64,000 bases of DNA from Ylistrum balloti. Taxonomy: Eukaryota. The notes beneath the pieces are model-generated. The model made no database searches. It was given only the letters and a program-made list of their open reading frames with translations, and was not told where the DNA came from. Location of the stretch: positions 496,001 through 560,000 of the forward strand of contig NW_026782650.1 of NCBI RefSeq assembly GCF_031769215.1. The letters run 5' to 3'. This document shows positions 10,576 through 64,000 of the stretch, piece after piece; within the stretch, counting starts at the first letter, position 1; every line of letters begins with the position of its first letter. The position numbers and the translations under genes were made by a program.

Positions 10576-10643
10576 AGCTGTACAACCAGACTTTAATGAA
10601 ATAGCCTTATACTTGTTCCTGAGTTCTGTGGAACTTCCATCAG
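10576..10643 (+). CDS. Unidentified short-exon gene, 68-nt exon (R-AVQPDFNEIALYLFLSSVELPS)
   Basis: tatttcAG acceptor and cag|GTATAA donor. Only the phase-2 frame is open; it ends in phase 1. Confidence 0.55.
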
Positions 10644-12154: not shown

Positions 12155-12809
12155 ATCAAAACCACGAGATTTTCACACAAACCAATTTCACATGAACTAT
12201 TTTCACTCAACTACATATATATGTACATGTGTATGATCGTAACAAGGGGAGATTAGATAGGAATGAAGCTTTAACACCTACTTGGATAGTGTAAGTATGT
12301 ACATTTACATCACAGATACAACCTTTACTGTTGTCAAGCTATCATGTAGTCAGTGATACAATAGCACAGGGCAATCTTGACTGAAACCAGTATCCTATTT
12401 CAAAATTCTATCGTCTTCTATTTTTAAATCTGCATGACGTCAAACGTGTAATGATTCCTGAGTTAGAATAAGAAAGAAGATAAGTCCTCCATCAATGATA
12501 AGAGAGACGGTCAGATAGTGTCAACTTTCTATTATAAAACATCATACGGGAATGGGTAATATTTCGGGTAACGTTCACACATAATTGTGTCTTCCCGATC
12601 AATTCTGGCACATCAATATGGGTCATTTTTCATTACCGGGTGACATTAATCACGTGTAGAAGTGTAGGGCTAGCCAATTTGGTCTTCTGAATGGGCCATC
12701 ACTGCAGTATTATTCCCGATCAGGTACACCGGAGAAAAAGTGGGTCGCATTAGGGAATTTTCCTGTCACTTTTCGGCGCATCAATAACGTCATGTTTTCA
12801 TTACTGTAG

Positions 12810-12850
12810 ATATCGTGATTATCAAGACAAGTGTGCTCCGGCCAGACTAG
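12810..12850 (+). CDS. Unidentified short-exon gene, putative terminal exon (D-IVIIKTSVLRPD-stop)
   Basis: ttttcattactgtAG acceptor. Phase-1 entry gives 13 codons and TAG at 12848-12850. An AATAAA at 13726 could be its polyA signal. Confidence 0.45.
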
Positions 12851-15800
12851 ATTGTTACACTGACCAATCTGGTCAAGCGATACGGTCCGAAAACCTTCCA
12901 GTCAAGACTGTCCTTAATACAACGGATCAGATTTGATATCCTCTTCCCTTGTCAGAGTCGTGACGTTTGTGTGACGTCAGTGACATATTCCGGAAATCGA
13001 GTGGAATTATCACAATGAAGCCAACAGACGACAATGTTGTTGGCCTGTCTGCGGGTTTCGCTTTTTTGATAGAAGTCCATCAACTTGTCTAATTTATAAG
13101 AACTTATTCAGATGAGAGGAATCCTAATATCCTGTAATTGTCTACCATTCTATCTATTTCTATCATTATTTAGGTAAACCTGTTGTTTACACAAACATGT
13201 TTCAATATGTTTCCATTGAAATTGGTTTTTCAGCTTAAAGTTTGAGTTGATCTCTTAACCAAGTCCGAAGATCTGACCATCGGGATGAAGGTGACCATTA
13301 TCTGAGCGACAATTCATACTTAGTCCTATCACGTAAATCGATAAAAGAAACCTTGTACGCCATCTTGTTTTCTCCCAAACTAATCGTTATATAAGATAAA
13401 CTTCAACGAAATTTATTATCAGGTGTCATAGAACTTCGCTCTCATTCGTTGTTTTTTTCGTTTTGTCTCCTTTGAAAGACAGCGGTGCCATTTATCCTGA
13501 AGGGTATCAGTCATTTGTAAAAGTGTAACGATAAACACGACAGTAAAAAGCTAACTGTCGCCTGGCGATCCTTTAGTATGACACAGTAATTAGTCTTACA
13601 GATATACCCATTACAACGGATGTGTATACTTAAACTTTTGCCCTCTATCTCGCAAGATATCTTGCTCATCTTGAAACTCATAAATCCTAAAATAGTTTGT
13701 CTAGACAGAATTACACCACACCGGTAATAAACAAATGCTTATTTTTCTCAAATACAGTTAATATTATCTACGTGATTTACTTAGCATATCTACAAAAAAT
13801 GACGTGTGGTACCTACTTTCGCGAGACCCAGTTTGCAATTGGCAAATCCCGCCGATAAGGACCTTTGTGAATGATATATATGAACACTAGAATGTCCCAA
13901 CACCAGCAACCGGCATGATTATTAGAGAGGTATGATGATGCATATCGTGGGTTCTGGAACGCCATCACCTCACTATCATAACGTGTCGCTGGACTAAGGC
14001 CTTACAATATTGATACCGGCTCTGTTGTTGTCGGTAGACATGGAAACGTGGGGCTCTAATGTATGTTACATATGTAAAACGCTATAAAATCGGTATCATT
14101 TTGCACATGTTCAACCAATCCATTCGTTATTCTTGTCTCAAAATTTACAATCAATTGGAACATATTTAATGTTCATTAAATTTTCACAGCAGGTATTTCT
14201 TTTTTTAAATAGTAATGTTCAAATACGATATTGGCAGACGATGAAAACGTCGTTCTGTATTATCGATGACATGAAAACTTGTAACATCACTATGATAGGG
14301 AACATGTCTACTGGCAATGAAATGTAATTGTACACCACAGAAATCAATCAGTTTTCGCTCAATTGTTTTATCACCAATTCGAAAAAATACGTAAAATTGC
14401 ACATCATTTTCACTAACTTTACAGACACATGTCACATTCTCTCTCTGGATAATGCAGTTGTCTGATTTCCTTCAGTATCTTTTGTTCAAAAATTCAAGAA
14501 GCCATTTAAACAAGTGAAGACGGTAAGACTTAGTTAACACAGCATTACGACGACAGCAGTTTGTCATTCATCTATCTGTTTGAAACCTGGATATTGTCTA
14601 TCTACTTATATACTCATTAATGTCCTGTTTTCCAATCAATGTGAACATTAAGAACCAAGTTTGTCGGGAAGAAATCCTTGACGTTTCAGTTGAGATTTAA
14701 GTGATGTTATTTACACCTAGTGTAAACATCGATCTCAATTGGTATTGTAATGTAAGCTATAAGACAGGGGATGCGTTTCAAATATTCAGGATGATTCAGT
14801 AGTAATTATATAATGTCATTTTAACATGTTCCGTATCAGCTTTCTATTTCATCATAAACCGTATACATCTGTGTAGCTTTGGGTAATTCTGTTTCTGTAT
14901 CAATACATACGTTGCGCCTGATAAACGCCGACCTGTAAGTAACTGTAATACAATCTGTGTCGGATCACTGTCGACCCGTATAGAAGTGTTCCCCAGAGAC
15001 CCGTGCAGTAATGACCCTATATGTCGTATTTCCTATCAGATCATTGGGTTTACGTTGGCCTACTTACAGTCCAACATTTGATAGACTGGTCGAGTGGTCA
15101 TTTCATTTCTCTTGACCCTTCTTTTCCGTACCTTGTAATTACGTGTTGAAATATTTGCTCTCCCTGAAGGGGTCAAATAAACATACAATGTATCACAACT
15201 AGTGCCTCATTGGTGATTAATACAGATCTAATTCTTCCCCCACCCAATACACCTTTAATTGTACTTAAAGTCTATTTCCACTGCTAGGTATATCGACGGA
15301 TATAGTCTACGTGTCACAAGATCCATACAACCTTGGCCCTTGTGACTAGGGAACGCATTTGAATTTTATATTGACGTTGCAAGAACCCAGAATAGATTCC
15401 ACCAACAGCAATGTCTAGTATCAATGTAAAAAACCCGGATGATACTGATATTCCAAAGGTCTGTACGTCTGATAGATATGCTAATTAGACGATGCAGTAA
15501 AATCTATGGATTTCTCTGTATGTGTGGTGAAGGAAAACAAACTAGATCAGGTGTATGACGTAAGTAATAGAATGTCATAATCATGTTGTTTATGAAGTTA
15601 ATTACACCTAAAATACAAAGCATATATTGTTTCATATTTTCGTCATGTGGTTCACATTTTGTTCAAAATAGTTGTTTTTCGTTTTTGTTAATTTGTTTGT
15701 TTGTTTGGGTTTTTTTTGTCTTGTTTATCACTTCAATATGTATTGCATCGTGTTGTATACATATGTCTTACATATCATTGGTTTTGCTGGACTTCATTTT

Positions 15801-18805: not shown

Positions 18806-18984
18806 TGTGTCTCAACACAAACTCTCGCGTAATCTTTCACACTGAGACATTTCCAACACAAACTCTCACGTGATCTTTTGTACTGAGACAGTTCCAACAC
18901 AAACTCTCGCGTGATCTGTGACACTGAGACAGTTCCAACACAAACTCTCGCGTGATCTATGACACGGAGATAGTTCCAACACAG
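18806..18984. repeat. 41-nt tandem repeat, ~4.5 copies
   Basis: ACTGAGACA recurs at 18841, 18882 and 18923. Confidence 0.9.
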
Positions 18985-19869
18985 TTACGATCTTATACCT
19001 TTGTTGTGTGACATTAAAAGTACACACTGTAGCACTCTCTGGCTCCACTGCCTTGTTTTGAGTCTTGTTGTTGCGTCAGTGTTTTAACCATTCCTTCACG
19101 ACACTACACCCTCTCTCCATGATACCCTACACGTGAGTGGTGTATTTATCTGTAACTCTCCTAAAAAAGTAATTTAATCTGTGGAAAATGCACATGCAGA
19201 ACTCAATCCTTTCAAATGCTTGATAACGATTGTTTGATCCGAGGAGATCACAGACAAATCCAACCGGCAATACTGTTTATGCATTCGTTCCATATGAAAT
19301 ATGTACTGACGATGTAATAATACGAACCGAGCTGCTACTGACAGGCTGTGTTTTTACATGTTAAGGAAGATAGAGAACGCGAATGTGATAATACAGATAT
19401 TGTTTCAAATATACTTTAAATTTGTTTTCAATATGAAATAATACGCATGTTTAAGACATTGACAGTCATTTTGAATTTTTTCCTGGCGTCATCAGGTCAG
19501 ATGCGGAAACATCGCAGCAACGGTTGACGATGATTGTCAATATCCATTTGTCGTACTGCCATATTTGGAGTCAGCTTTTAGCTAATAATATTGAAAGACT
19601 GGGATCTGATTTCATGTTTCTTTAACATAAATTACCGTTATAATAAACACTACGGCTAATTAAACCCGGAGAGAATATCAAACCCATTACACAGGTCAAT
19701 AACTGCAGAACCAAGTTTCGGTAGAAGTTCGATGTGTAACATTGCTTGTGAGAGTTTAACAGAAAACCATACATACATATTTAAAATCAATACTTGAGGC
19801 CGTGATTATTGCGCGGTTATTGATTCGGTCTACTGAATTACGAATAAAAGTAAAGTTGGGTCGGACCTT

Positions 19870-20340
19870 CCTCTCTACACGTGCGTAGGTGTACAAACCA
19901 CGCCCATCTGGTACACGTGGACACACGTGCATGTATACAGATGATTATTGAATCAGAGTCGCATGGGTGACAGTTGTAGGAATCACATTTCAAGGTGTTG
20001 ATTGAAATTATTGTTTAGAATTTTCAAATAAGAATTTTCGCTCGTTTTTACTAATCTGTTAGCATGGAAAAACTGACCCATGTAAACAGTCAGCTGTGAG
20101 TGAAGATGGGAGATATGATGTGTTTACGTCATGTGTTTTAACACGTCTATAAATATACGCTTACACGTGATACATGTATGTTGCTACAGTATATAAGTCC
20201 AGAAAGTAAGTGTTCTATAACTTTCCCACGATTATCACAGACCACGGCGGACATACTTCATTTACATTCTAAAACGAGACTCACAAATTCGGAGGTACAA
20301 TAAATGCTTACTTCGTCATTTCTCCGTTCTGATGGTAAGT
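19870..20340 (+). promoter_or_regulatory. Candidate GPCR promoter and non-coding first exon
   Basis: CACGTG at 19878, 19914, 19924 and 20164; TATAAATA at 20148; TATATAAG at 20190; perfect donor GTAAGT at 20335, about 1.4 kb upstream of the ATG. Motif evidence only. Confidence 0.3.
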
Positions 20341-21763
20341 TTGTACTTGTTACACTGTAAAATTTGGCACATTTAAGGTAGTCAGCAGGCCTTTAGTTAT
20401 ACAAACCTGATCAAACGGCAACCTGACTAATTTAACGCTCTCATTCTGGTACGTATCAAAAAGTTTCTCTCATCTTGGAAAGAAATGCAGTATCAGTGTC
20501 CAACCTGAGGACCATTTACAGAGAAATATTGGTTTGCTGAGAATGGTCAGTATCGTGCCGAAGTCTTGGTCAGTGTCCTTGGCGCACTATTGAAAATAAC
20601 GTTTGATTTACTTATTATTATTACGATGTGTTTATTTCCGGACACCGACTATTTCATACGCCACTGTATTGATCGGAACAGAGGTCCAGACATTGACCAG
20701 CTGACCACGTGACCACTGATTAGAGGTGCCTTGGTTGTTATGTAATGTGACAATAATGTCTGATTGTATAATATTGTTTACTATCGCCGTCAAATGGTCA
20801 ACAGATACACCATAGTGTGATCACAGAAAGGGGTCCGGTCTGAAATTCTTCACTAGTTCAGGTTGGAAATACTTAGGAAACTCGTATCAGTGTAGACTTC
20901 AGGATTCTTTATAAATCTAATGAGGTCTAGATTGATTCCTTAGACAAGCACTGCCACTAAAATCACTGTGATTTGTACTCCTTCAGTTATCAATAAGGTC
21001 ATGTTTTAATTGGTTTAAATCACAAAATAGTGATAAAATACCTTTTTGATATTTTTTTCATGTAAATGGAATATACAACTATTGCCTTTTTGCTTGAAAA
21101 CTATTGTGGTTAAAATTGAAGTGGAGCCAATACTTCTAAAACAGTCTATAATTTTATTTAAAGCTTTTAACGATCAGCGTTCGGTCAAAGATTAAACATT
21201 GATGTATTTGATATTGACTAATGTATGTTTCTAGGGCATCGGGCAGCTTTGCATGAAGGACTTTTACATTTGTATATTGCAGGTGCTTATCTTGATACAA
21301 GCTGTCGTGATTTGGGCAAGGTAAATACACCACCATCCTGTGACGACCTGGATATACCTAATATTACAGCTATTTTATAGTCTGTTAAACTAAATGGGGT
21401 GACCTAGCTATCTGAGTGCTGAGAGCAAATTAGCGGAAATTTAATAACACACAGTAAGTATAGAGAACATCTACCTGTGTGCTTTAGATGGAGTAAAACC
21501 ATAAGCATCTCTGAGGAATACTCACACGTCACGTCACTTTCTGCGGATGGACACAGTGAGGTGAAGAGTCATGCGTGTTCTTGCGCTACAGCTTGTCCTG
21601 TCAATATGGCTCTTCAATGAAATACTGATGAAATATATTCCAAAATGGTGTTAAACAATTTTGATGCCTTGGTAAATATCTTACTTGGATTGGTGATAAA
21701 AAGCATCAAGCAATTGGAGATAGCAGTAAATAAGTTTGGATAACCGATGTCCCACTGTGTGAT

Positions 21764-23840: not shown

Positions 23841-25185
23841 AGTTAACACTGCTGTAAGTTCCATACATAACATTCCTGTTCACAGTGCCACAGTTAACAC
23901 TGCTGTACATAGAGTGCTATAGTTAACACTGCTGTACATAAAGTTCTATAGTTAACACTGCTGTACATTGAGTGCCATAATTAACACTGCTGTACATTGA
24001 GTGTCATAGTTAACACTGCTGTAAATTGAGTGACATAGATAACACTGCTGTACATAGAGTGCCATAGTTACCACTGCTGTACATTGAGTGCCATAATTAA
24101 CACTGATGTACATAGAGTGCCATAGTTACAACTGCTGTACATTGATTGACATAGTTAACACTGCTGTACATCGAGTGCTATTGTTAACACTGCTGTACAT
24201 AGAGTGACATAGTTAACACTGCTGTACATAGAGTGACATAGTTAACACTGCTGTACATAGAGTGACATAGTTAACACTGCTGTACATAGAGTGACATAGT
24301 TAACACTGCTGTACATTGAGTGTCATAGTTAACACTAATGTACATTGAGTGCCATGGATAACACTGCTGTACATAGAGTGCCATAGTTACCACTGCTGTA
24401 CATTGAGTGCCATAATTAACACTGATGTACATAGAGTGCTATAGTTAACACTGCTGTACATTGAGTGCCATAATTAACACTGCTGTACATTGAGTGTCAT
24501 AGTTAACACTGCTGTACATTGAGTGTCATAGTTAACACTGCTGTACATAGAGTGACATAGTTAACACTGCTGTACATAGAGTGACATAGTTAACACTGCT
24601 GTACATAGAGTGACATAGTTAACACTGCTGTACATAGATTGCCATAGTTAACACTGCTGTACATAGAGTGTCATAGTTAACACTGCTGTACATCGAGTGA
24701 CATAGTTAACATTGCTGTACATAGAGTGCAGTATTTAACACTGCTGTACACAGAGTGACATAATTAACACTGCTGTACATAGAGTGACATAGTTAACACT
24801 GCTGTACATAGAGTGTCATAGTTAACACTGCTGTACATTGAGTGTCATAGTTAACACTGCTGTACATCGAGTGCTATTGTTAACACTGCTGTACACAGAG
24901 TGACATAATTAACACTGCTGTACATAGAGTGCTATTGTTAACACTGCTGTACATAGAGTGACATAGTTAACATTGCTGTACATAGAGTGCAGTATTTAAC
25001 ACTGCTGTACATTGAGTGCTATAGTTAACACTGCTCTACATAGAGTGTCATAGTTAACACTGCTGTACATCGAGTGCTATTGTTAACACTGCTGTACACA
25101 GAGTGACATAATTAACACTGCTGTACATAGAGTGCCATGGTTAACACCTCTGTACAGAGAGTGCAATATTTAACACTGCTATAAG
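23841..25185. repeat. 29-nt minisatellite (GTTAACACTGCTGTACATAGAGTGACATA), ~46 copies, GPCR intron 1
   Basis: Periodicity read directly (for example 24241 to 24270). Confidence 0.96.
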
Positions 25186-41311: not shown

Positions 41312-43514
41312 CTTCACAGTAGTGCCCTTCACAGTGGTACCCTTCACAGAGGTACCCTTCACAGTAGTACCCTTCACAGTGGTACCCTTCACAGTGGTAC
41401 CCTTCACAGTAGTACCCTTCACAGAGGTGCCCTTCACAGAGGTACCCTTTATAGTAGTACCCTTCACAGTGGCACCCTTCACAGTAGTACCTTTCACAGT
41501 AGTACCCTTCACAGAGGTTCCCTTCACATTGGCACCCTTCACAGTAGTACCCTTCACAGAAGTACCCTTTACAGTGATAACCTTCACCGTAGTACCCTTC
41601 ACAGTACTACCCTTCACAGTAGTACCCTTCACAGTGGTACCCTTCACAGTAGTACCCTTCACAGTAGTACCCTTCACAGAGGTACCCTTCACAGTGGTAC
41701 CCTTCAAAGTGGTACCCTTCACAGAGGTACCCTTCACAGTGGTACCCTTCACAGTGGCACCCTTCACAGTAGTACCCTTCACAGTGGTACCCTTCACAAT
41801 GGTACCCTTCACAGTGGTACTCTTCACAGTGGTACCCTTCACAGTGGTACCCTTCACAATAGTACCCTTCACAGCAGTACCCTCACAGAGGTTCCCTTCA
41901 CAGTAGTACCCTCACAGAGGTACCCGTAACAGTGGTACCCTTCACAGTAGTACCCTTCATAGTAGAACAATTCACAGTAGTAACCTTCACAGTAGTACCC
42001 TTCACAGTGGCACCCTTCACAGTGGTACCCTTCACAGTAGTACCCTTCACAGCGGTACCCTTCACAGTGGTACCCTTCACAGTAGTACCCTTCACAGTAG
42101 TACCCTCACAGTAGTACCCTTCACAGAGGTACCCTTCACAGAGGTACCCTTCACAGTGGTACCCTTCACAGTAGTACCCTCACACCGGTACCCTTCACAG
42201 TGGTACCCTTCACAGTAGTACCCTCACAGTAGTACCCCTCACAGTGGTAACCTTCACAGAGGTACCCTTCACAGCGGTACCCTTCACAGTGGTACCCTTC
42301 ACAGCAGTACCCTCACAGTAGTACCATTCACAGAGGTACCCTTCACAGTAGTAACCTTCACAGTGATACCCTTCACAGAGGTACCCTTCACAGTAGTACC
42401 CTCACAAAGGTTCCCATTCACAGAGGTACCCTTCACAGTAGTAACCTTCACAGTGATACCCTTCACAGAGGTACCCTTCACAGTAGTAACCTCACAAAGG
42501 TTCCCTTTACAGAGGTACCCTTCTCAGTAGTACCCTTCACAGTGGTACCCTTCACAGAGGTACCCTTCACAGTAGTACCCTTCACAGTGGTACCCTTCAC
42601 AGCAGTACCCTCACATAGGTTCCCTTCACAGTAGTACCATCACAGAGGTTCCCTTCACAGCAGTACCATCACAGAAGTTCCCTTCACAGTAGTACCCTCA
42701 CAGAGGTTCCCTTCACAGTAGTACCATCACAGAGGTTCCTTTCACAGCAGTACCCTCACAGAGGTTCCCTTCACAGTAATATCCTTCATAGAGGTACCCT
42801 TCACAGTGGTACCCTTCACAGTGGTACGCGTCACAGTAGTACCCTTCACAGTAGTACCCTTCACAGAGGTTCCCTTCACAGTAGTACCCTTCACAGAGGT
42901 ACCCTTCACAGTGGTACCCTTCACAGATGTACCCTCACAGAGGTTACCTTCACAGTGGTACCCTTCACAGAGGTACCCTTCACAGTGGTACCCTCACAGA
43001 GGTTCCATTCACAGTAGTACCCTCACAGTGGTACCCTTCACAGTGGTACCCTTCACAGAGGTACCCTTCACAGTGGTTCCCTTCAGAAAGGTACCATTCA
43101 CAGTCCCTTCCCAGTGGTTCCCTTCACAGTAGTACCCTGACAGTATTACCCATCACAGAGGACACTTCACAGTGGTACCCTTCACAGAGATACCCTTCAC
43201 AGTAGTACCCTTCACAGTAGTACCCTCACAGAGGTACCCTTCACAGCAGTACCCTCACAAAGGTTCCCTTCACAATAGTACCCTTCACAGTAGTACCCTC
43301 ACAAAGGTTCCCTTCACAGAGGTACCCTTCACAGTGGTACCCTCACAGAGGTACCCTTTACAGTGGTTCCCTTCACAGAGGTACCCTCACAGAGGTACCC
43401 TTCACAGTCGTACACTTCACAAAGGTACCCTTCACAATGGTACCCTTCACAGTAGTACCCTTCACAGAGGTACCCTTCACAGAGGTACCCTTTACAGTGG
43501 TTCCCTTCACAGTG
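41312..43514. repeat. 15-nt satellite (CACAGTGGTACCCTT), ~145 copies
   Basis: Periodicity read directly. It produces the spurious VKGTT / VPFTV / SGTLH ORFs. Confidence 0.97.
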
Positions 43515-49387: not shown

Positions 49388-49461
49388 ATAAACGAACTAC
49401 TTACTGTGTTGATTTTATCTTTTTAATTATCTGATCTATTTACAAGCAAAAAACACATAAA

Positions 49462-50058
49462 GAACTTCGTTATCTCAGTGTTACACAACATATATAATAG
49501 AATTTCGTTATCCCAGTGTTACACTACATATATAATAGAACTTCGTAATCCCGGGTGTTACACTACATATATAATAGAACTTCGTTATCTCAGTGTTACA
49601 CTACATATATAATAGAACTTCGTTATCCCAGTGTTACACTACATATATAATAGAACTTCGTAATCCCGGGTGTTACACTACATATATAATAGAACTTCGT
49701 TATCCCAGTGTTACACTACATATATAATAGAACTTCGTTATCCCAGTGTTACACTACATATATAATAGAACTTCGTAATCCCGGGTGTTACACTACATAT
49801 ATAATAGAACTTCGTTATCCCAGTGTTACACTACATATATAATAGAACTTCGTTATCCCGGGTGTTACACTACATATATAATAGAACTTCGTTATCTCAG
49901 TGTTACACTACATATATAATAGAACTTCGTAATCCCGGGTGTTACACTACATATATAATAGAACTTCGTTATCTCAGTGTTACACTACATATATAATAGA
50001 ACTTCGTAATCCCGGGTGTTACACTACATATATAATAGAACTTCGTTATCACAGTGTT
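49462..50058. repeat. 38/39-nt minisatellite (GAACTTCGTTATCCCAGTGTTACACTACATATATAATA), ~15 copies
   Basis: Period 38 (49692 to 49730), with an interspersed 39-nt CCCGGG variant. Confidence 0.96.
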
Positions 50059-51103
50059 CGCAATTGAAACAACAGGTAAGCTAACGAGCATCAATTACGT
50101 CCATCTTCATGTCACACAAAAAATAAGCACAATAATACATACAAACTAAGTTTAATAACATGGAGATACTTTTTCATTTTACATTTGTTGTGAGTTTTTA
50201 TTTTATAGAAGGATAAAGAATGTTTCATTAATTTAGTCAGGGCATAACTGCTCCCGAAATTTGCAGAGGGTTTGTCAGCTTTAGCATCTGGGTTTCCTTA
50301 ACCCTTGCAGGTATTATCACGGTAGACTCATATCTTTCAACAAAATGATTGATCCTGATGAACTGTCCTAGCTTTGTACACTTCCAAAATATTGAAAACA
50401 AATTTTAGATCATCACAAATTTCAATTTTATAACTGCTAAATGGTAGATAAAAGCTTTCATCATTGAAGATTTTAGTTGGTACTATAGACTATAAACTGA
50501 TATGTTAATTGTTAAATTGATAGTGTTTTCAGTACCTCTCGCAAAATGTACCATTATTAACAGAATGGACGAAATTGACTTCCCTGCCGTCTACAATACC
50601 AATAGACTTACTGTAAAAAAATATTTTAATTCGTGTTTTAAAGACAGCTTTTACCTAAATATGTCAATGATGAAGGTCTACAAAAAATGACAAAACGTTT
50701 GGTTTGTGTCATTGAAATTGACCATCTGTTAACTGTTCACAAAGACATACTCCTAAACATATGTCTCGCTTTCAGATAAACAAAATCACCACATCAGTAT
50801 TTTATCTTTCAGAAATACGACACTATTGTAATGAAAAAATACAAAAAAAAAAACAAAACGAAAATTGATTTGTACATAGTATGACTCGAAATGACGGCAA
50901 CAGTTGTCACTGTTCATTGAATTGGGTTGCATCTGTTGGTATCTGTCGGTGTGTACGTAGAAACTAAGTAATTGATGAAAATTACCACGTGATACGCGAC
51001 AAATGCTGTATACGTTACAGTTGTTCTTGCCTTATATGTCTGGTATGCTCTCTTTCTTTTTTTTCCAGAAAATTCGGATGCGGAATATTTTGAAATTCGA
51101 GGA

Positions 51104-51410
51104 ATGGCGGAAAATAGTAGATGTTCGCGAAGCTACGTATTTAAAAGTGGCATAATTGCCGTTCTTGTCCTCACGGCTTCAAATCTAGTGTTCTTCATGG
51201 TGTATGAACGCTTCAGTTACCATGGTATTCACACTAGAATGAGCAATTTGCTGACTTATAGTAGAAATATATCATATGAAATAGAACAAATAGTTCAACG
51301 ATTCAATGGAACTGTGCAATTCAATGGAAGTTCATATATGAGGACGGACGTAACCAATGATACCATCCAGAGTTCGCTAGCCAAATGTCCTGAGAACCCG
51401 CCAAAACTAG
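51104..51410 (+). CDS. GT7-family beta-1,4-glycosyltransferase (predicted beta-1,4-N-acetylgalactosaminyltransferase, BRE-4-like), coding exon 1
   Basis: Type II membrane topology: short cytosolic tail, TM GIIAVLVLTASNLVFFMVY, glycosylated stem, and the conserved CPENPPKL. Acceptor ttttccAG at 51068, so a 5' UTR exon lies upstream. Donor g|GTAGGT, phase 1. Confidence 0.88.
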
Positions 51411-52005
51411 GTAGGTCGTATGTTTTCTACTTACTGCTCCGCTGCCCAGACTCGGACCATAGGGATTTGAAACTAATACCCGACTCTCAATCCATTTATA
51501 TATATATATATTCTATGAGCCACAATTCTTAGTCACACATATATTACCTTGAAGAAAAATGTTTGATTTTTTCCAATGAGTGCTTGATTGATCAAGCGTA
51601 AACCAAGTTATTACCTGACAAATTCAGTAATACAGGTAGACATGGCTATCTAGCTATTTCCTTGTCCGGTTGTAACACGCTCTCGTCTCTAATGGGTACT
51701 TTGTTATATCTATGCCAAAATCGCTGATTCTACGCTTACTGCGGTAAAAAGTACCCACGACCTTGTCTATACGGCATTCCCTTTGATGTGATCATGTCTC
51801 GTACGTTGTAGAAGCTGGACATTTACGTGTATTGTTTATACCTACGATTTGTATTTTTGAGAGGGTGGAAATTTGAATGCAGCAGTCAATGTAATTTGAA
51901 ATGAAACTGTCCGACACTATGTAATAACTAATCCTTTTCTATCCTCTATTTCGCTTTCTTGGGAAAAAGGTTTATATTGTTTTAGAGTTATCATTGGGGA
52001 GAATG

Positions 52006-52345
52006 ACAATTTATTCACAGTAGTATCGATACACCTGTTACTTATCATTCAATAACAATTTATTCACAGTAGTATCGATACACCTGTTACTTATCATTCA
52101 ATAACAATTTATTCACAGTAGTATTGACATACATGTTACATATCATTCAATGACAATTTATTCACAGTAGTATCGATACACCTGTTACTTATCTTTCAAT
52201 AACAATTTATTCACAGCAGTATCGATACACCTGCTACTTATCATTCAATAACAAATTATTCACAGTAGTATTGACGCACCTGCTACTTATCATTCAATGA
52301 CAAATTATTCACAGTAGTATTGACGCACCTGCTACTTATAATTAA
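52006..52345. repeat. 49-nt tandem repeat, ~7 copies, glycosyltransferase intron 1
   Basis: TAGTATCGAT recurs at 52021 and 52070. Confidence 0.92.
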
Positions 52346-53421
52346 TGATACTGTATGAATGCCGAACTGTTTCTTTTTCAACTGCCCATAGTATCAATAA
52401 CAGAGCAATAAACATAGTCGTTACTATGTTCCAATGCTGTAATATTACACTAAGTTATTGTATGAAAATAAAGATAAAATTATCATTGAAATGTTGATTC
52501 AGATCAGCGGAAGGTTTAGTCCTTGATGTCTTGATAATACATAATTCATAATATTATTTTCTATTTCTCATTATTTATAATTATAAGATAGTACAAAAGA
52601 TAAACAAATGAATAACACCTTTTTTTTAAAATTGATACTTAGATACATTAGGTTTAAAATCAATTTAAAAGCGTCATACAGCTGTTTCGTTCTGCTATCA
52701 CGAAGCATCGTAGGCGACTGAGGAAAATCTAAAGTGATCGAAAGAAAAGTCAAAATCTAGACGGGAAGGTGCAACAGTACCGTAATTGAATAATTTATAA
52801 TCTATTCGGTAGGCTTAGTAAGACAAACCTTTGTAAATCACACGTATAAGACATAAATAGTGAGTGCCCAATATTTGTATACTATTTAGAAATACTTAAC
52901 TAAAATAAATTCGTCCTTGTTTTAAAACAGTACATGAGTAAAAAGAACTCTCAAACTTAAGGAAATGGACGTCATTTTGTTGTATGTTCGGTAGTTTGAA
53001 CGCATTGGGATCAAAACTTATAACAACTAGTGGCAATGTTTGATTAATTTCATGTTTATTACTTGTCAACATTGACTTTGACATTGAGATGAATGCGGAA
53101 ATTATCAGTACTTTGTTGTTGAACACGATTGTAAAAAAACGAACAACTGCAAAGGGGAATAACTCAATAAAATGGCGTTTCAATGTTTTAATGCTCTTTT
53201 ACTTAGTAATTAAAGACAAATTAAGTAACAGATTAAAATGAAAAATATCAGATAAGCAATATAAGGATATTCTTTTTCATGATTTTTTATGCCTAATCCT
53301 CAAATTTCAGTTTTTATTTAGTGTTTTGCAGTATTAGATATACATTTACGTATTTAATCGAGTCCAGTAGCTCTGTATGATGAAATATGCTCTCCATCGT
53401 TAGTCGCGTTTCTCTTTACAG

Positions 53422-53654
53422 TTGGACCACTGGCTACTTATAAGAGATCGCCATCCTTTCCAGAGATAGAAAAAGAATACTCGTGGTTACTTGCCGGTGG
53501 CTGTTATACTCCTCTGGAGTGTCAAAGTGATCACAGAGTGGCCGTCATTATACCATATAGGAACAGACAGCAACAGTTAAAGACTTTTCTCTATAACATC
53601 CACCCCATTCTTCAACGACAGCAAATACACTACGGAATTTACGTTATAGAGCAG
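53422..53654 (+). CDS. GT7 glycosyltransferase, coding exon 2
   Basis: V-GPL...GGCYTPLEC...RVAVIIPYRNR...HPILQRQQIHYGIYVIEQ, hallmark GT7 motifs. tttacAG acceptor, cag|GTAATA donor, phase 1 to 0. Confidence 0.95.
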
Positions 53655-54164
53655 GTAATATTATTATAAATATAACTATGGTGTTATGTCTCCAAATAAC
53701 GTTCCTGTTGTAAGATTTGATCTGTTGTTCTCGTTGTGATTTTAGTGTACCATCATACAATGTTTAAATACTTCACAAAGCAATGATTACTACACAGATC
53801 TAGAAAAGGAAAATGGTTTTCTCTCAAACAAATCGTCTTTAGAGTAGGCGTGATGAATAAATCCAAAGATGCCGGAGGAATATGATCTGCTCGCCATTTA
53901 TCCATTAAAACATACGTCAATTAACATTAAGATTGGTTCTTCATTTCAAATGAAGAGAATCACATAAGCTGTCGAAAAAATACGAACAATGTATATTGGT
54001 ATATTGATAAACCATTTGTATGACTTATTTCAAAGCGCTCCATGGGCTATGCCAATTCTTTTTCTGAAGGAGCAGAATGCAGTTTATTCATTGTTACTAC
54101 AGTAATGTTTAACGACGTTAATCAATAGGTATAGGCTTGATAAACATTATTATGAGATAGCGCT

Positions 54165-54790
54165 GCATGGTTAACTTGGCTTATAAATAGGGATGGTTAA
54201 CTCTGATGGTAGCTATGGTGATAAACTGTGCTGATAGCTGGGGATGGTTAATTTTGCTAATAACTGCGGGTTGTTAACTGTGCTGCAGCTAGGGCTGGTT
54301 AACTATGCTGATCGCTTGGTGTAGTTAACTGTGTTTATAGCTCGGGTGGTTTACTGTACTGATAGATGGAACGGTTAACTATGCTGATAGCTGTGGTGGT
54401 TAACTACGTTGATAACTGGGGACAACAAATATACTGATAGCTGGGATGGTTAGTCGTGCCGATAGCTGAGATGGTAGACTATGCTGATAGCAGGGGTTAC
54501 TTAACTGTGCTGTAACTGAGAATGGTTAACTGTGGTGGCAGTTTTGTATAATTTACTGTGCTGATAGTTGGGGTTGCTAAATGTTTTACTGTTAGCTTGT
54601 TGTGGTTAAATGTGCCGATAGCTGGGGGAGGGGGGTAAACTGTGCTGATAGCTTGGTGAAGAGACTGTGTTGTGCTATTCTCGTGTAATTTGCTGATGGC
54701 TTGGGTGGTTTACTTTGATGGTAGCTGGGGGTTGTTTACTTTGCTGATAGCAGGTAGGAATGGTTATCTGTTGGTGGTCTTTTTTCAACC
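54165..54790. repeat. Old, degenerate ~24-nt minisatellite (GGTGGTTAACTGTGCTGATAGCTG-like)
   Basis: Recurring GGTTAACT / GCTGATAGCT motifs with many substitutions. Confidence 0.75.
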
Positions 54791-55113
54791 TACATGAACA
54801 GGTAAATATAAAAGTGGTGAAACTGAATCTGAAGACTTATTTTATATTATATGTAATGAACTACCAAGCATGGGCTCACATTCAAATCTATATGATATCT
54901 TTTGTTTTTGGTCAATTTTTAATTTCTAAACTCGACTTCTTGACATCCACCCTTCATATCCATGGTATTAACGACGAATCTCCCGAAAACAAAATGCTCT
55001 GTGATGCACGTGTTATTTCGCATGGTAAATTTTAATTCTTGGAAGTCATACCAAATTGAAATTCAGCAATGAGGTTAATGCTTTCTGTATCTATCCTTTG
55101 GTTAAAAATCAAG

Positions 55114-55695
55114 TAGTAGGATGGTACAGTGATGTGAAGCAGTTTTATTAATAATTCGGCTGCTAGGATCACTTTGTATAATAGTAGGATGGAACAGTGA
55201 TGTGAAGCAGTTTTATTAATTATTCGTCTCCAGGCTGAAGACGAAGACAAAACTGCGACATGTCGCAACTTATTACAGGCATTTACTGTATCTATAATTT
55301 CATTTGTGTTAGCATGGTAACCCAGCTTAGAGACTGCAGCTTGTTGTTTGTTGTACATATCTTATAAACAAAAAACAGCAGAGAAAAGAAATGTTGTCAA
55401 ATGGTCATTTATTAAATGTCAGGAACATTTCAAATACAACCATAATATCAATCACTGTTGTTATATAATATATAGATCTGAATGACATTAACTTCAGTCT
55501 ATATGTACAAAAAAAGATGGGGTACAAATTATCGGCACCGATGAGGGGCGCAAGATACATATACATGGAGGGATACATGATATGTAGAAAAATGCATCTC
55601 ATCACCCCTTGTTCGACTCCAGGCTGAAGACGAAAACAAAACTGCGACATGTCACAACTTATTACAGGCATTTACTGTATCTATGAATTCATTTG
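55114..55695. repeat. Two short direct duplications: ~45-nt core at 55114 and 55182; ~83 nt at 55224-55306 and 55613-55695
   Basis: TAGTAGGATGG..CAGTGATGTGAAGCAG occurs twice; CTCCAGGCTGAAGACGAA...CATTTG occurs twice. Confidence 0.85.
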
Positions 55696-55940
55696 CATTT
55701 CTATATATTATTCACGTGTATTTTCAACTTGCCTTCATTGGAATAACTCTACTACGTAAATGTCAAACCCTCATTCATTAATTCTGACAGGTTAGATATA
55801 AAGTCTTGTTTATTTCATTTCATATAACATACAGCAATCATTGTTATCCTTCAACAAATAGAACACAAACATTTAAACGTCTGTCCTTACCTTAACATTA
55901 CCTGACATAATTGGTATAATTTGGATTGTTACAATAACAG

Positions 55941-56128
55941 TCTGGTAACAGCACGTTTAACCGGGCCTTGTTGATGAACATCGGTTACGCCGAGTCTGTG
56001 AAGATCAACAACTACAATTGTTTCGTTTTCCATGACGTTGACCTGATACCGGAGGATGACCGGATTCACTACGGATGTGGCAAGCAGCCCCGCCATCTAT
56101 CGGCTGCTATTGATAAATTCCAATACAG
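55941..56128 (+). CDS. GT7 glycosyltransferase, coding exon 3
   Basis: SGNSTFNRALLMNIGY...CFVFHDVDLIPEDDR...PRHLSAAIDKFQY-R, including the DxD metal-binding motif. Phase 0 to 2. Confidence 0.95.
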
Positions 56129-56499
56129 GTGAAAGAATCGGCAACATTTTACAATAAAAGAAATAAACATGTATTGTAGCCGATATTATTTTACAAATTG
56201 CATCAACATATGCATATGTAAGTTTATCCAAACAAATATAAATACATTAAGATAATGTGATTAGGAGAATTCTGAACTTAACTTTATAATTCACGGTACT
56301 GAAAAAGAGACAGGACCAAACCATAGATTTGATCAGTTCATTTGGATGACCAATTCTATTTTAGAAGTAGTCCTGGTAGTATATTGTGTTACTGTTCTTA
56401 GTTGTTAAATTTTAAGACCTTAGTGTCCTGGTTTTATTTCATATTCACTTTATTGTTTATCGATATTCCTTGATCCGTTACGAAAGACAACATGAAATT

Positions 56500-56670
56500 T
56501 AAAAAATATCCCTTGAAACATCGCCAGAAACAACAGGTATTATCAAATATCTTCCTCGAAACATCACCACAAACAACAGGTATTATTAAATATCTCCCTC
56601 GAAACATCACCAGAAACAACAGGATTCTTTTAAAGATATGCCTCAACACATCACCAGAAACAACATGAAA
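56500..56670. repeat. 43-nt tandem repeat, ~4 copies, glycosyltransferase intron 3
   Basis: CAACAGG recurs at 56531, 56574 and 56617. Confidence 0.88.
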
Positions 56671-56744
56671 TAAAACGTGTTACACAGTTCACATGTTGAA
56701 TCACTGCTTGTATGACATTGTAGTTAACACTGTTTTGCTTGCAG

Positions 56745-56867
56745 ACTTCCTTACAAAAATCTGTTTGGAGGAGTCTCACAATTACCCAAAGAAGTCTTTG
56801 TTAGGATAAACGGATTCTCGAACAAATATTTTGGTTGGGGAGGAGAGGATGACGACTTAAGCGTAAG
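56745..56867 (+). CDS. GT7 glycosyltransferase, coding exon 4
   Basis: R-LPYKNLFGGVSQL...INGFSNKYFGWGGEDDDLSV-R, the catalytic GWGGEDDD motif. ttgcAG acceptor, ag|GTGAGG donor, phase 2 to 2. Confidence 0.95.
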
Positions 56868-57073
56868 GTGAGGGCGAGAATAGTAACCAAAATACTATGA
56901 CTATCTGATAATGAAGATTGTTGAAAAGTGATCACTCAAGCTCCTGTGAATGACCATCTTTCTACCATTTAATTCTTTTCCAACGATGGCAATTTGGAAT
57001 TTTATTATAAGGTAGTTTAAGTGTTCTGAATTGTTATAAAACAGTATACAGATGATAGTTGGTATATTGACAG

Positions 57074-57159
57074 AGTACGTACTGAAGGATACACTGTGGA
57101 GAGGTATTCAATGAATATTGCCAGATACAGAATGATCAAACATGAGCATGAAAGCAGTA
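57074..57159 (+). CDS. GT7 glycosyltransferase, coding exon 5 (3' end missing or undefined)
   Basis: ttgacAG acceptor. Reads R-VRTEGYTVERYSMNIARYRMIKHEHESS with the conserved ARYxMIxH metal-ligand motif. The expected NxxNPxR end and phase-2 donor are absent; the sequence runs into the 38-nt satellite. Confidence 0.85.
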
Positions 57160-57164
57160 TAGCA

Positions 57165-60100
57165 CAAAAACAAACTACCAAGCATCTTATCACAGATATA
57201 ACACAAAACAAAACAAACCACCAGATATATCATCACAGACACACTACAAAACAAACCACCAGATATATCATCACAGACACACTACAAAACAAACCACCAG
57301 ATATATCATCACAGACACACTACAAAACAAACCACCAGATATATCATCACAGACACACTACAAAACAAACCACCAGATATCTCATCACAGACACACTACA
57401 AAACAAACCACCAGATATATCATCACAGACACACTACAAAACAAACCACCAGATATCTCATCACAGACACACTACAAAACAAACCACCAGATATCTCATC
57501 ACAGACACACTACAAAACAAACCACCAGATATCTCATCACAGACACACTACAAAACAAACCACCAGATATCTCATCACAGACACACTACAAAACAAACCA
57601 CCAGATATCTCATCACAGACACACTACAAAACAAACCACCAGATATCTCATTACAGACACACTACAAAACAAACCACCAGATATCTCATTACAGACACAC
57701 TACAAAACAAACCACCAGATATATCATCACAGACACACTACAAAACAAACCACCAGATATCTCATCACAGACACACTACAAAACAAACCACCAGATTACA
57801 TACACAGTACAAAACAAACCACCAGAAATTTCATCACAGACACACTACAAAACAAACCACCAGATATCTCATCACAGACACACTACAAAACAAACCACCA
57901 GATATCTCATCACAGACACATACACAGTACAAAACAAACCACCAGATATCTCATCACAGACACACACAGACACACTACAAAACAAACCACCAGATATCTC
58001 ATCACAGACACACTACAAAACAAACCACAGATATATCATCACAGACACATACAAAACAAACCACCAGATATCTCATCACAGACACACTACAAAACAAACA
58101 CCACAAAACAAACCACCAGATATCTCATCACAGACACACTACAAAACAAACCACCAGATATATCATCACAGACACACTACAAAACAAACCACCAGATATC
58201 TCATCACAGACACACTACAAAACAAACCACCAGATATCTCATCACAGACACACTACAAAACAAACCACCAGATATATCATCACAGACACACTACAAAACA
58301 AACCACCAGATATCTCATCACAGACACACTACAAAACAAACCACCAGATATCTCATCACAGACACACTACAAAACAAACCACCAGATATCTCATCACAGA
58401 CACACTACAAAACAAACCACCAGATATATCATCACAGACACACTACAAAACAAACCACCAGATATCTCATCACAGACACACAACAAAACAAACCACCAGA
58501 TATCTCATCACAGACACACAACAAACCACCAGATATCTCATCGCCGACACACTACAAAACAAACCACCAGATATCTCATCGCCGACACACTACAAAACAA
58601 ACCACCAGATATCTCATCACCGACACACTACAAAACAAACCACCAGATATCTCATTACAGACACACTACAAAACAAACCACCAGATATCTCATCACAGAC
58701 ACACTACAAAACAAACCACCAGATATCTCATCACAGACACACTACAAAACAAACCACCAGATATCTCATCACAGACACACTACAAAACAAACCACCAGAT
58801 ATATCATCACAGACACACTACAAAACAAACCACCAGATATATCATCACAGACACACAGACACACTACAAAACAAACCACCAGATATCTCATCACAGACAC
58901 ACTACAAAACAAACCACCAGATATCTCATCACAGACACACTACAAAACAAACCACCAGATATCTCATCACAGACACACTACAAAACAAACCACCAGATAT
59001 CTCATCACAGACACACTACAAAACAAACCACCAGATATCTCATCACAGACACACTACAAAACAAACCACCAGATATCTCATCACAGACACACTACAAAAC
59101 AAACCACCAGATATCTCATCACAGACACACTACAAAACAAACCACCAGATATCTCATCACAGACACACTACAAAACAAACCACCAGATATCTCATCACAG
59201 ACACACTACAAAACAAACCACCAGATATCTCATCACAGACACACTACAAAACAAACCACCAGATATCTCATCACAGACACACTACAAAACAAACCACCAG
59301 ATATCTCATCACAGACACACTACAAAACAAACCACCAGATATCTCATCACAGATATCTCATCACAGACACACTACAAAACAAACCAACAGATATCTCATC
59401 ACAGACACACTACAAAACAAACCACCAGAAATTTCATCACAGACACACTACAAAACAAACCACCAGATATATCATCACAGACACACAGATATATCACACA
59501 GACACACTACAAACCACAAACCACAGATATATCATCACAGACACACTACAAAACAAACCACCAGATATCTCATCACAGACACACTACAAAACAAACCACC
59601 AGATACAGACATCACAGACACACTACAAAACAAACCACCAGATATCACAGACACACTCATCACACAGACACACTACAAAACAAACCACCAGATATCTCAT
59701 CACATACACACTACAAAACAAACCACCAGATATATCATCACCGACACACTACAAAACAAACCACCAGATATCTCATCACAGACACACTACAAAACAAACC
59801 ACCAGATATCTCATCACAGACACACTACAAAACAAACCACCAGATATATCATCACAGACACACTACAAAACAAACCACCAGATATATCATCACAGACACA
59901 CTACAAAACAAACCACCAGATATCTCATCACAGACACACTACAAAACAAACCACCAGATATCTCATCACAGACACACTACAAAACAAACCACCAGATATC
60001 TCATCACAGACACACTACAAAACAAACCACCAGATATCTCATCACAGACACACTACAAAACAAACCACCAGATATCTCATCACAGACACACTACAAAACA

Positions 60101-61870
60101 AACCACCAGATATATCATCACAGACACACTACAAAACAAACCACCAGATATATCATCACAGACACACAACAAAACAAACCACCAGATATCTCATCACAGA
60201 CACACTACAAAACAAACCACCAGATATCTCATCACAGACACACTACAAAACAAACCACCAGATATATCATCACAGACACACTACAAAACAAACCACCAGA
60301 TATCTCATCAGATATCTCATCACAGACATAACAAAAATCAAACCACCAGATATCTCATCACAGACACACTACAAAACAAACCACCAGATATCTCATCACA
60401 GACACACTACAAAACAAACCACCAGATATCTCATCACAGACACACTACAAAACAAACCACCAGATATCTCATCACAGACACACTACAAAACAAACCACCA
60501 GATTACATACACAGTACAAAACAAACCACCAGATATATCATCACCGACACACTACAAAACAAACCACCAGATATATCATCACAGACACACTACAAAACAA
60601 ACCACCAGATATCTCATCACAGACACACTACAAAACAAACCACCAGATATCTCATCACAGACACACTACAAAACAAACCACCAGATATCTCATCACAGAC
60701 ACACTACAAAACAAACCACCAGATATCTCATCACAGACACACTACAAAACAAACCACCAGATATCTCATCACAGACACACTACAAAACAAACCACCAGAT
60801 ATCTCATCACAGACACACTACAAAACAAACCACCAGATATCTCATCACAGACACACTACAAAACAAACCACCAGTTATCTCATTACAGACACACTACAAA
60901 ACAAACCACCAGATATATCATCACAGACACACTACAAAACAAACCACCAGATATCTCATCACAGACACACTACAAAACAAACCACCAGATATCTCATCAC
61001 AGACACAGTACAAAACAAACCACCAGATTACATACACAGTACAAAACAAACCACCAGATATCTCATCACAGACACACTACAAAACAAACCACCAGATATC
61101 TCATCACAGACACACTACAAAACAAACCACCAGATATATCATCACAGACACACAACAAAACAAACCACCAGATATATCATCACAAACACACAACAAAACA
61201 AACCACCAGATATATCATCACAGACACACAACAAAACAAACCACCAGATTACATACACAGTACAAAACAAACCACCAGATATATCATCACCGACACACTA
61301 CAAAACAAACCACCAGTTATCTCATCACATACACGCTACAAAACAAACCACCAGTTATCTCATCACAGACACACTACAAAACAAACCACCAGATATCTCA
61401 TCACAGACACACTACAAAACAAACCACCAGATATCTCATCACAGACACACTACAAAACAAACCACCAGATATCTCATCACAGACACACTACAAAACAAAC
61501 CATTAGTTATCTCATTACAGACACACTACAAAACAAACCACCAGATATATCATCACAGACACACTACAAAACAAACCACCAGATATATCATCACAGACAC
61601 ACTACAAAACAAACCACCAGATATCTCATCACAGACACACTACAAAACAAACCACCAGATATCTCATCACAGACACACTACAAAACAAACCACAAGATAT
61701 CTCATCAGATATCTCATCACAGACATAACAAAAATCAAACTACAAAATATTACAGACACACTACAAAACAAACCACCAGATATATCATCACAGACACACT
61801 ACAAAACAAACCACCAGTTATCTCATTACAGACAACAAAAAATCAAACTACAAAATATCACAGACACAAA
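57165..61870. repeat. 38-nt satellite (CCAGATATCTCATCACAGACACACTACAAAACAAACCA), ~120 copies
   Basis: Periodicity read directly. Three units give the 38-aa pseudo-repeat of the 1592-aa ORF; the + strand unit contains no TAA, TAG or TGA. Confidence 0.98.
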
Positions 61871-62080
61871 ATAAGACAAAACTACAAGACACCTGATCAT
61901 AAATACAATACAAATCTCAGTTTGTTCCGTTGCACATAATTTATTCAATCTGTTATCCTTTACGTAAAGACACAACCGAAGGCAGTATTACTTGTCTGTA
62001 ATAAAGAATTAATATCCAAATGCTGTATATTCATATGAGCACCATTTACATTTTTTATATCTGATGTAAATCTTTTCTAG

Positions 62081-62216
62081 ATTTGGTCTCCTTAAAAAAG
62101 CAAATAAGCGATATAAAACTGACGGACTGAACAGCCTCAAATACCAAGTGTTAAATATCACGTATAACAAGTTGTACACGATGGTGTCGGTGTTGGTGAA
62201 ACAATCAGACTACAAG
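62081..62216 (+). CDS. GT7 glycosyltransferase, coding exon 6; missed by the ORF track
   Basis: tcttttctAG acceptor, phase 2. Reads R-FGLLKKANKRYKTDGLNSLKYQVLNITYNKLYTMVSVLVKQSDYK with the conserved DGLNSLxY and LYT. It either ends at donor aag|GTAGGT (62217) or reads through to TAA at 62316-62318. Confidence 0.9.
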
Positions 62217-64000
62217 GTAGGTAACACTGACGACGAATCTTTTCTGCAGAAATGTTTTATCAAGTTCTTGTTATTTAAGATGCTGCAACCAAACTGTCGT
62301 TATAACAGAACAAAATAACACTACTATTGGTGTAATGACACTCAGTTAAGAAAATAAAATATTGAGACCACACGTGTGCATTATCACGTTATGAAAGACA
62401 CATTATGATGCTAACATCGCTAATCTAAAATTTGCGTCTGTCTAATAAAATGCAGTTTTAATTTTTTTGCAAAAGGAATTTATATGATATGCGGAATCTT
62501 AAAGTTGTTTCCATTGAATGTGACATTTTTAAAACTCGTTTTTTGGGTTTCTTTTATTCATAATTCTAAACCAATTCATCATTCTATCATGTGAGCAGAA
62601 AGTCATGTAATAATATCACCTAGACAATAATTACTGTTAAACAACAGTTCGATGGTTAAATATATCCATACTATAACACTAATACAATAGTGTTTTTGTT
62701 TTATAAGTCTCTACTGGTTTAGAGTCCACATTATATGATATGTGATTTCTGCAATACAAAAGTAGTGTTTATGCAACCTCTTTATATTTGCCAATTCTTT
62801 ACATTTTAGTGAATACGTGATGAACACGTCCAGCTCCCGATATGCTGACTTCACAGCAGCTGTACAAGAGACCTCGCTGCCTCGTTGTGCATGTGAAAGA
62901 TAAATATGGCGTTCCATTTTGCTTCAGGTCCAGCTATAAAATGCTGTTCCAAGGCGCATTTATTTGAGAAAAATGATTACCTTAATTGGATGTTCACATA
63001 AGAACCGAAAGGTATGAAAGGAAAGGCCTAGGTTTTGTCCATGACACTCCAGCGTAATGATTTTACATTTAATGCAATTGATATTTCTCAGATGTTTTTA
63101 GTTTTTTCTACTTGAAGATGACAACTTTAGAATAAATACTATGCATGTGTTTGTAATGACGTTGTACTGTCGTTATTATTTTACCGTGGTGAGTAAACGT
63201 TATCTTGGTAACACTAGTACTCCTTTGAACTCTTTGCAACATTTCGCCATATTGTCACAGAGCATTCACATATTCAAATGAACCCATACAAGAAACTTAT
63301 ACAGCAAATATTGAAAAGTACAATGGATAATCATTAACATCGACTTTGCCTTTTTAATTTGTGTACACCTGTGATCTTCAAATCTAACGATATTATGTGT
63401 TGGTATGCATAGATTTTGATACACCTTCTATTGTTTCATATGTAAGAAAATACAATTTTCCCATGACCGACCGATATAAGTTTTTCATCCATTTTAACGA
63501 AGACGTACAACAGGCTTTCCATGAATGTTCAGTAACAGGAATATATATCATTGCTTCCATACCTATTAATACGTATTTGATGTTCACATGCATTCTGGTA
63601 TAAACGCAATCCGTATAGTATCGTCATATTTAGCAATAAAGATGTGACAAATTGTTTTTCGTTTTGAAAACGTCTTTCTCTGTTTTCCATAATCTTATAT
63701 TTACACCAATGAAAGGAATATTATAATCCAAACTTTCTATTCTTTGAATGTTGAAATCAATTTGGATACAACTTTGTTTGAAAATCTTCTTACCGTAGAC
63801 CTTAATTCAAACATCTTCAAACGTGCAGCCCTTAATAAAGTTTAGCAACAGATTTTGATTTGGACAGTAATAATTGTTGTATTTTCAATGTATGTATGTT
63901 TCCTTGATAGTAATTGTTTTCCAATGTAATGTAAATTAGGAGGTATAAAGAAGTTGTAATAACTTGTACCTCATCTCTTTTTCTGATGTTGACAATGCAT

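Follow-up and report, generated by a model that had tools for sequence, protein, structure and literature searches.

A beta-1,4-glycosyltransferase gene of the scallop Ylistrum balloti appears in the current genome assembly with a broken fifth exon, and the most likely cause is that the assembly dropped sequence beside an intronic minisatellite; the gene itself is probably not dead. The gene lies in a stretch of 64,000 nucleotides (nt) of the forward strand (NCBI RefSeq assembly GCF_031769215.1, contig NW_026782650.1, positions 496,001 to 560,000), here called the window, to which all positions refer unless stated otherwise. We propose that the assembly lost 279 bp at the left edge of the tandem array that lies in intron 5, and that the lost piece would hold the last 19 to 20 nt of exon 5 (coding for N-x-x-N-P-x-R), an AG|GT splice donor, and ~260 nt from the start of the intron. 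Living animals would then use the donor of exon 5 itself to join this exon to exon 6, and the array would leave with intron 5.

Read contigs across the end of exon 5

Evidence from reads was taken from Logan contigs, which are assemblies made with k = 31. Five DNA runs of Y. balloti from two studies cover the stretch, and the contigs of four of them (X1 to X4) were aligned to positions 56690 to 57260. In all four runs, the contig over exon 5 aligns to the window up to position 57159, continues with 279 letters that the window does not have, and then realigns at 57159 to 57243. The length of the insert is the same in every run (X1 record 2, 308 to 586; X2 record 8, 86 to 364; X3 record 15, the same letters; X4 record 22, 1580 to 1858). 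The junction 57159|57160 of the window is found in none of the contigs of X1 to X4, and depth at 57150 to 57189 is a single contig per run.

The last 65 of the 279 letters consist of a second copy of 57167 to 57203 and a 28-mer, AAACTTCAAACTACAAAATATCACAGAC, which is absent from the whole 648-Mb assembly at up to 1 mismatch. Because the 28-mer is absent and all four runs carry the insert, the assembly lacks, at the exon break, sequence that is present in all sampled animals. Identity between the contigs and the window reaches one base past the codon AGT, to the A at 57159, which fits the codon AAY (Asn) expected from the orthologues. The initial annotation had listed an assembly error among its explanations and had proposed that reads across the exon edge be examined. 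The insert in four of four runs and the absent 28-mer favor that explanation, with a lost piece of 279 bp in place of the ~25 to 50 bp that had been suggested; the N-x-x-N-P-x-R codons and the donor that would mark an artefact in such reads would lie within the added letters.

The haplotypes in the surrounding sequence bear on the origin of the break. Run X1 is heterozygous at positions 56883, 56897, 56918, and 56928 in intron 4, where the window mixes both X1 haplotypes, and runs X2 to X4 differ from the window at further sites. The mixture suggests that the assembled sequence at these sites is a mosaic from site-by-site polishing of a collapsed diploid consensus and corresponds to no real haplotype, and it also suggests that X1 is the assembled animal. 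The depth of the X1 contig (11.2, versus 13.8 in the shared flank and 7.7 in a single-haplotype branch) fits the presence of the 279 letters on both X1 haplotypes.

The missing end of exon 5

Exon 5 follows an AG acceptor, with its first base at 57074, and up to 57158 it reads RVRTEGYTVERYSMNIARYRMIKHEHESS. As described initially, the exon is intact up to MIKHEHESS (57158) and degenerate repeat units follow from 57160, with neither the NxxNPxR tail nor the phase-2 donor needed for exon 6 beside the array. The pattern N..[NS]P.[RK] is absent from every forward frame of positions 57000 to 62100. The GT at 57157 is indeed in phase 1, and the donor AG|GTATTC at 57103|57104 is in phase 2, as had been noted; use of the latter would remove YSMNIARYRMIKH, including the M..H metal ligands. 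The headline drawn from these observations, that the exon end was lost to a satellite, holds for the assembly alone, given the extra letters in four read sets.

In the closest orthologues, exon 5 ends in HESSNSQNPNR|F (Pecten maximus, P0156; Logan transcript P0155) and HESGNAENPKR|F (Mizuhopecten yessoensis, P0158). In two paralogues from the same genome, it ends in ...NAVNPKR and ...NMPNPKR, followed by AG|GT, and the scallop exon 5/6 boundary after N-P-x-R is the same as in these paralogues. An ungapped alignment of the P. maximus orthologue with bovine B4GALT1 sets ...KMFKHQHESSNSQNPNRFHLL against ...RMIRHSRDKKNEPNPQRFDRI. Since exon ends with N..NPxR and AG|GT are found in orthologues and paralogues, the exon in the window is short of seven residues (N-x-x-N-P-x-R, about 19 to 20 nt) and of the donor. 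The complete long flexible loop of GT7 enzymes (...H-x5-N-x-x-N-P-x-R-F...) is present in no frame of the window. This loop contains the metal site and folds over the donor sugar (PMC4202792), and loss of the seven residues would very likely abolish activity. Beyond the array, GAAGGCAGTAT (61979 to 61991) resembles GAAAGCAGTAT at the exon 5 break (57150 to 57161) in 10 of 11 bases; the likeness may be due to chance, or the last array unit may once have included a copy of the exon end.

The RefSeq protein of the gene, XP_060082044.1 (P0157, [quoted passage not shown]), has IAQNFS where the orthologues have N-S/A-Q/E-N-P-N/K. Its residues HESSIAQNFSRFG are obtained from the window only by the join 57169|62072, which implies an intron with the ends AC..AT. 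The six residues IAQNFS are an artefact, in which the annotation bridged the missing 279 bp by a non-consensus intron; both the wrong residues and the intron arose because the 279 bp are missing from the assembly. A search with P0157 matched no transcript-derived Y. balloti protein. Exact look-up of five ATG-initiated open reading frames (ORFs) around exons 3 to 5, and of the exon 1 ORF, returned 0 entries in the protein collection, and the exon 5 ORF, used in a word search, gave no candidate.

Alternative explanations of the break

We infer that the fault is an assembly error instead of an allele. A real 279-bp deletion at the unstable array edge, formed for example by slippage or mediated by microhomology and segregating in the population as a null or severely impaired allele, would also account for the junction in the window; the assembled haplotype would then be truly devoid of the exon 5 end, the donor, and the start of the intron. 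Such arrays are unstable in length (PMC3087553), breakpoints that are not perfect repeats fit a deletion as well as they fit a consensus error, and the clean junction next to otherwise intact exons is what a young allele would look like. However, the junction occurs in none of the four read sets from two studies, all of which have the 279-letter form. X1, seemingly the assembled animal, appears to have the long form in each of its haplotypes, and neither a second copy nor a haplotig of the locus occurs in the assembly. We therefore consider a segregating deletion unlikely, and the recent null allele envisaged in the initial annotation finds no support in any of the four read sets.

Were the lesion fixed, with 279 letters that leave the exon incomplete, we would be dealing with a young pseudogene, or with a gene that uses a cryptic path from 57156 through 61921 to 61963 to 62081 or that encodes a fusion of the catalytic domain with the repeat. 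The cryptic path, which had been put forward earlier, is in frame and has AG/GT sites, and the array is open in all frames. Yet the product of the cryptic exon, ICSVAHNLFNLLSFT, does not resemble the conserved loop, and the similarity of the 3′ flank of the intron to that of P. maximus is weak and not significant. The translated array has no Pfam match above the cut-offs, a period of 38 bp shifts the frame with each unit, and the composition of the unit accounts for the open frame. With six other exons free of any decay as well, a fixed lesion is highly improbable, and neither the fusion nor the rescue exon is supported. Conversely, the contigs could be misleading and the window correct, if de Bruijn paths had made a false 279-letter insert. 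The contigs are k = 31 assemblies, and the extra piece ends in a repeat-like manner, with its copy of 57167 to 57203 and 28 further letters. But the unbranched 279-letter path was recovered independently in four samples, and a true 57159|57160 junction would give a branch or a contig of its own, neither of which was seen; we give this explanation hardly any credence. Insertion of a transposon with target-site duplication was considered as a candidate and rejected, given that the repeat unit is unique to the locus and that the remainder of the exon is not found beyond the array.

Several points weigh against an assembly dropout. The sequence read covers the last 65 of the 279 letters, and we infer from the orthologues that the first 214 contain the exon end, with N-x-x-N-P-x-R, and the GT donor. 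No RNA run among the runs searched covers the stretch, and the evidence on splicing presented here comes from DNA. A deletion allele may be heterozygous in the assembled animal, whose identity with any of X1 to X4 is unproven, and contigs can drop rare variants. The two breakpoints share only weak similarity (CAGTA versus CAGACA), so a straightforward collapse of repeats is not obvious. In favor of a dropout, misassembly of such repeats has a precedent in amphioxus, where a "mirage," a tandem duplication of an exon-intron boundary, was aberrantly assembled in a genome draft (PMC3087553).

The gene and its product

The gene occupies positions 51104 to 63135 of the forward strand, has seven exons (Table 1), and belongs to the GT7 family of beta-1,4-galactosyl- and N-acetylgalactosaminyltransferases. 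With P0157 as the full-length query and the window exons searched singly, all window exons match the RefSeq protein at 100% (tblastn), in agreement with the earlier statement that all other exons are intact. These matches identify the genome as that of Y. balloti, whose RefSeq assembly is given as GCF_031769215.1 in PMC13004937. P0157 has both Pfam domains of the family, Glyco_transf_7N and Glyco_transf_7C, each above the gathering score. The GT7 motifs DVD (in FHDVDLIP), FGWGGEDDD, and the M..H metal ligands (RMIKH) are present and align with bovine B4GALT1. Exon 3 aligns to bovine and human B4GALT1 with E values of about 1e−18, and exon 6 aligns to the C-terminal DGLNSL...YT..V strand of B4GALT1. 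The locus is single-copy in the assembly, where a second copy or haplotig was searched for and none was found.

TABLE 1 Features of the glycosyltransferase gene and of its intron 5 in the window
Feature	Positions	Strand	Evidence
Exon 1: start codon, cytoplasmic tail, membrane anchor, stem	51104..51410	+	Donor G|GTAGGT; tblastn with P0157, residues 1-102 at 100%
Exon 2: Glyco_transf_7N region, VAVIIPYRNR...	53422..53654	+	PF13733, 85 bits; P0157 residues 103-180 at 100%; acceptor ...ctctttacag
Exon 3: FHDVDLIP metal/uridine diphosphate (UDP) motif	55941..56128	+	PF13733, 68 bits; bovine B4GALT1, E = 6.5e-19
Exon 4: FGWGGEDDD; Leu at the position of bovine Tyr289 (LPYKN-L-FGGVS)	56745..56867	+	PF02709, 64 bits; donor AG|GTGAGG
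Exon 5 as assembled: ...RYRMIKHEHESS and one A	57074..57159	+	Translation; read contigs agree up to 57159
Breakpoint	57159..57160		279 letters absent from the window, present in contigs of 4 DNA runs
Degenerate units at the array edge	57160..57238	+	Sequence; unit table
Minisatellite of about 122 units of 38 bp, rich in A/C and poor in GT and stops on the + strand	57201..61873	+	Tandem Repeats Finder (TRF); unit table; intron 5
Unique 3′ part of intron 5, ending in ...ttttctag; holds the hypothetical 43-nt exon 61921-61963	61874..62080	+	Hypothetical exon not conserved, unsupported
Exon 6, phase 2 in: (R)FGLLKKANKRYKTDGLNSLKYQVLNITYNKLYTMVSVLVKQSDYK	62081..62216	+	Donor AAG|GTAGGT; B4GALT1 C-terminal strand; P0157
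Exon 7, coding part: MTTLE and stop	63118..63135	+	Agrees with the C terminus of P0157

The sequence indicates that the gene is probably an ordinary, functional bre-4-like GT7 beta-1,4-N-acetylgalactosaminyl (GalNAc)/galactosyl (Gal) transferase, with a predicted product that would be a Golgi type II beta4-GalNAc/Gal transferase. Like bovine and human B4GALT1 (PDB 1fgx, 1nf5, and 2ae7) and BRE-4 of Caenorhabditis elegans, the scallop enzyme belongs to the GT7 fold family and has the DVD, WGGEDDD, and M..H motifs as well as the C-terminal DGLNSL strand. It differs from bovine B4GALT1, which has Tyr289, by a Leu at this position. In view of the work on Y289L/I substitutions, a preference for GalNAc as the donor is predicted for the scallop enzyme.

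A locus-specific minisatellite in intron 5

TRF delimits the 38-bp array at 57201 to 61859, with 121.8 copies and 90% matches. Its 4659 nt contain 11 GT and 3 stop trinucleotides on the forward strand, and the initial annotation was right that this near stop-free, GT-poor sequence gives a 1592-amino-acid in-frame ORF (57096 to 61874). The ORF is open because the repeat unit has no stop trinucleotide in any frame, and no coding function is needed to explain it. The period is not a multiple of 3, and in Pfam the translated array gives only sub-threshold noise, neither of which is expected of a protein-coding repeat. The units in the window are without GT, and hence they offer no pseudo-donors.

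When searched genome-wide at up to 2 mismatches, the unit gave 101 matches, all of them at C793:553239-557793, which is the array of the window, and 0 on the reverse strand. The array is thus not part of a dispersed satellite family. The term "satellite" used for it earlier was an overstatement, and the array is better described as a locus-specific minisatellite.

Tandem repeats are abundant in the window as a whole, where those with a period of at least 10 form 22 arrays and cover 18.6 kb of the 64 kb (29%). Other arrays include a 43-bp array in intron 3 (56487 to 56672) and arrays at 41312 to 43514 and 23844 to 25180. Upstream of the gene, overlapping 44-amino-acid ORFs at 49478 to 50067 stem from a tandem repeat (TRF array 49457 to 50058).

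Arrays at the same donor in Pecten and Mizuhopecten

Intron 5 of the P. maximus orthologue (L025; GCA_902652985.1, LR736842.1) also contains an array. There, exon 5 ends at 10015 with ...GAGAGTAGTAACTCACAGAACCCCAATAG|GTAGGT, and the intron is filled by an array of ~5 kb (9989 to 14989) of 44- and 66-bp units that starts inside exon 5. Each unit joins the end of exon 5 and its donor to 34 nt from the start of the intron. Of the 29-nt exon end there are 8 perfect copies, 1 authentic and 7 intronic, and the intron has 75 copies of AATAGGTAGGT (AATAG|GTAGGT). Judged from its sequence, this array offers identical pseudo-donors in an exceptionally long natural series. The array of M. yessoensis (L026) has a period of 46 bp and 18.7 copies (18896 to 19760); it begins 48 nt downstream of the donor of exon 5, and its units, ...AACCTATACAG|GTAGGTATAAC (CAG|GTAGG), are a diverged copy of the gene's own AACCCAAAGAG|GTAGGT junction. 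The same intron has a second, unrelated 53-bp array at 20131 to 20448. The annotated proteins of P. maximus and M. yessoensis imply that the first, most upstream donor is used in both.

All three arrays are found at the exon/intron boundary: the array adjoins exon 5 in Y. balloti, spans the boundary in P. maximus, and lies 48 nt past the donor in M. yessoensis. Units made of the exon end and the 5′ splice site are seen in P. maximus and, in diverged form, in M. yessoensis; in Y. balloti, the units seen are without GT, and the boundary units would lie in the first 214 of the extra letters. The similarity between the Y. balloti and P. maximus units (core AAC[C/T]ACCAGAT..CTC) is marginal, with 39 of 1000 shuffles reaching the score (41 of 1000 for the edge units), and the similarity between the Y. 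balloti and M. yessoensis units is not significant. On the right flank, Y. balloti and P. maximus have GATCATAAAT.CAAT in common at a similar distance from the end of the array, a score reached by 20 of 300 shuffles. Because tandem repeats with a period of at least 10 account for 29% of the sequence in the window and 39% at the Pecten locus, the presence of an array in the same intron is by itself weak evidence. We claim on these comparisons that the scallop arrays have the same position at the exon 5 donor; common descent is not proven.

The junction-copying minisatellite of Pecten and Mizuhopecten represents a repeat type described before, to which these orthologues add one more gene. In intron 7 of human F7, a 37-bp variable number tandem repeat (VNTR) presents a series of identical donors, of which only the most upstream is used (Borensztajn et al. 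2006, PMC1557585). As in the F7 VNTR, where the authentic donor is followed by tandem copies of itself, the scallop minisatellite begins at an exon/intron boundary. The fit is close for P. maximus, where the first unit spans the exon 5/intron 5 boundary and the annotated protein takes the first donor. Unlike the F7 VNTR, which has a handful of units, the scallop array is about 5 kb long and has more than 100 units; moreover, the Y. balloti units in the window are without GT, and the boundary unit is missing from the assembly.

A second parallel is offered by the "mirages" of amphioxus, which are minisatellite-like tandem duplications of exon-intron boundaries in Adh3 and globin genes (PMC3087553). 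Mirages are intronic tandem copies of an exon end and splice signal, vary in length, leave normal splicing undisturbed, and tend to be misassembled in drafts (PMC3087553); the scallop arrays are likewise intronic, and those of P. maximus and M. yessoensis also copy an exon end and its donor. In contrast to the mirages of amphioxus, which were described within species or haplotypes, the array described here is from a mollusc and is at the same donor in three scallop genera. One could conjecture that an old mirage-type minisatellite has been at the exon 5 donor since before the split of Ylistrum, Pecten, and Mizuhopecten, that it may have been kept as landing pads for the U1 small nuclear ribonucleoprotein, for example through the more than 75 perfect pseudo-donors of P. 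maximus, and that it repeatedly spawns exon-end deletions, with the window junction as one such natural null allele. We regard this scenario as unlikely.

Implications

Users of the genome should count this gene neither as a pseudogene nor as a fusion protein. Where a minisatellite starts at a splice donor, the end of the exon can go missing from an assembly. Because tandem repeats make up such a large share of the window, the Y. balloti genome can be expected to contain further false lesions of this sort. The biological interest lies in the junction-copying minisatellite of the Pecten and Mizuhopecten orthologues.

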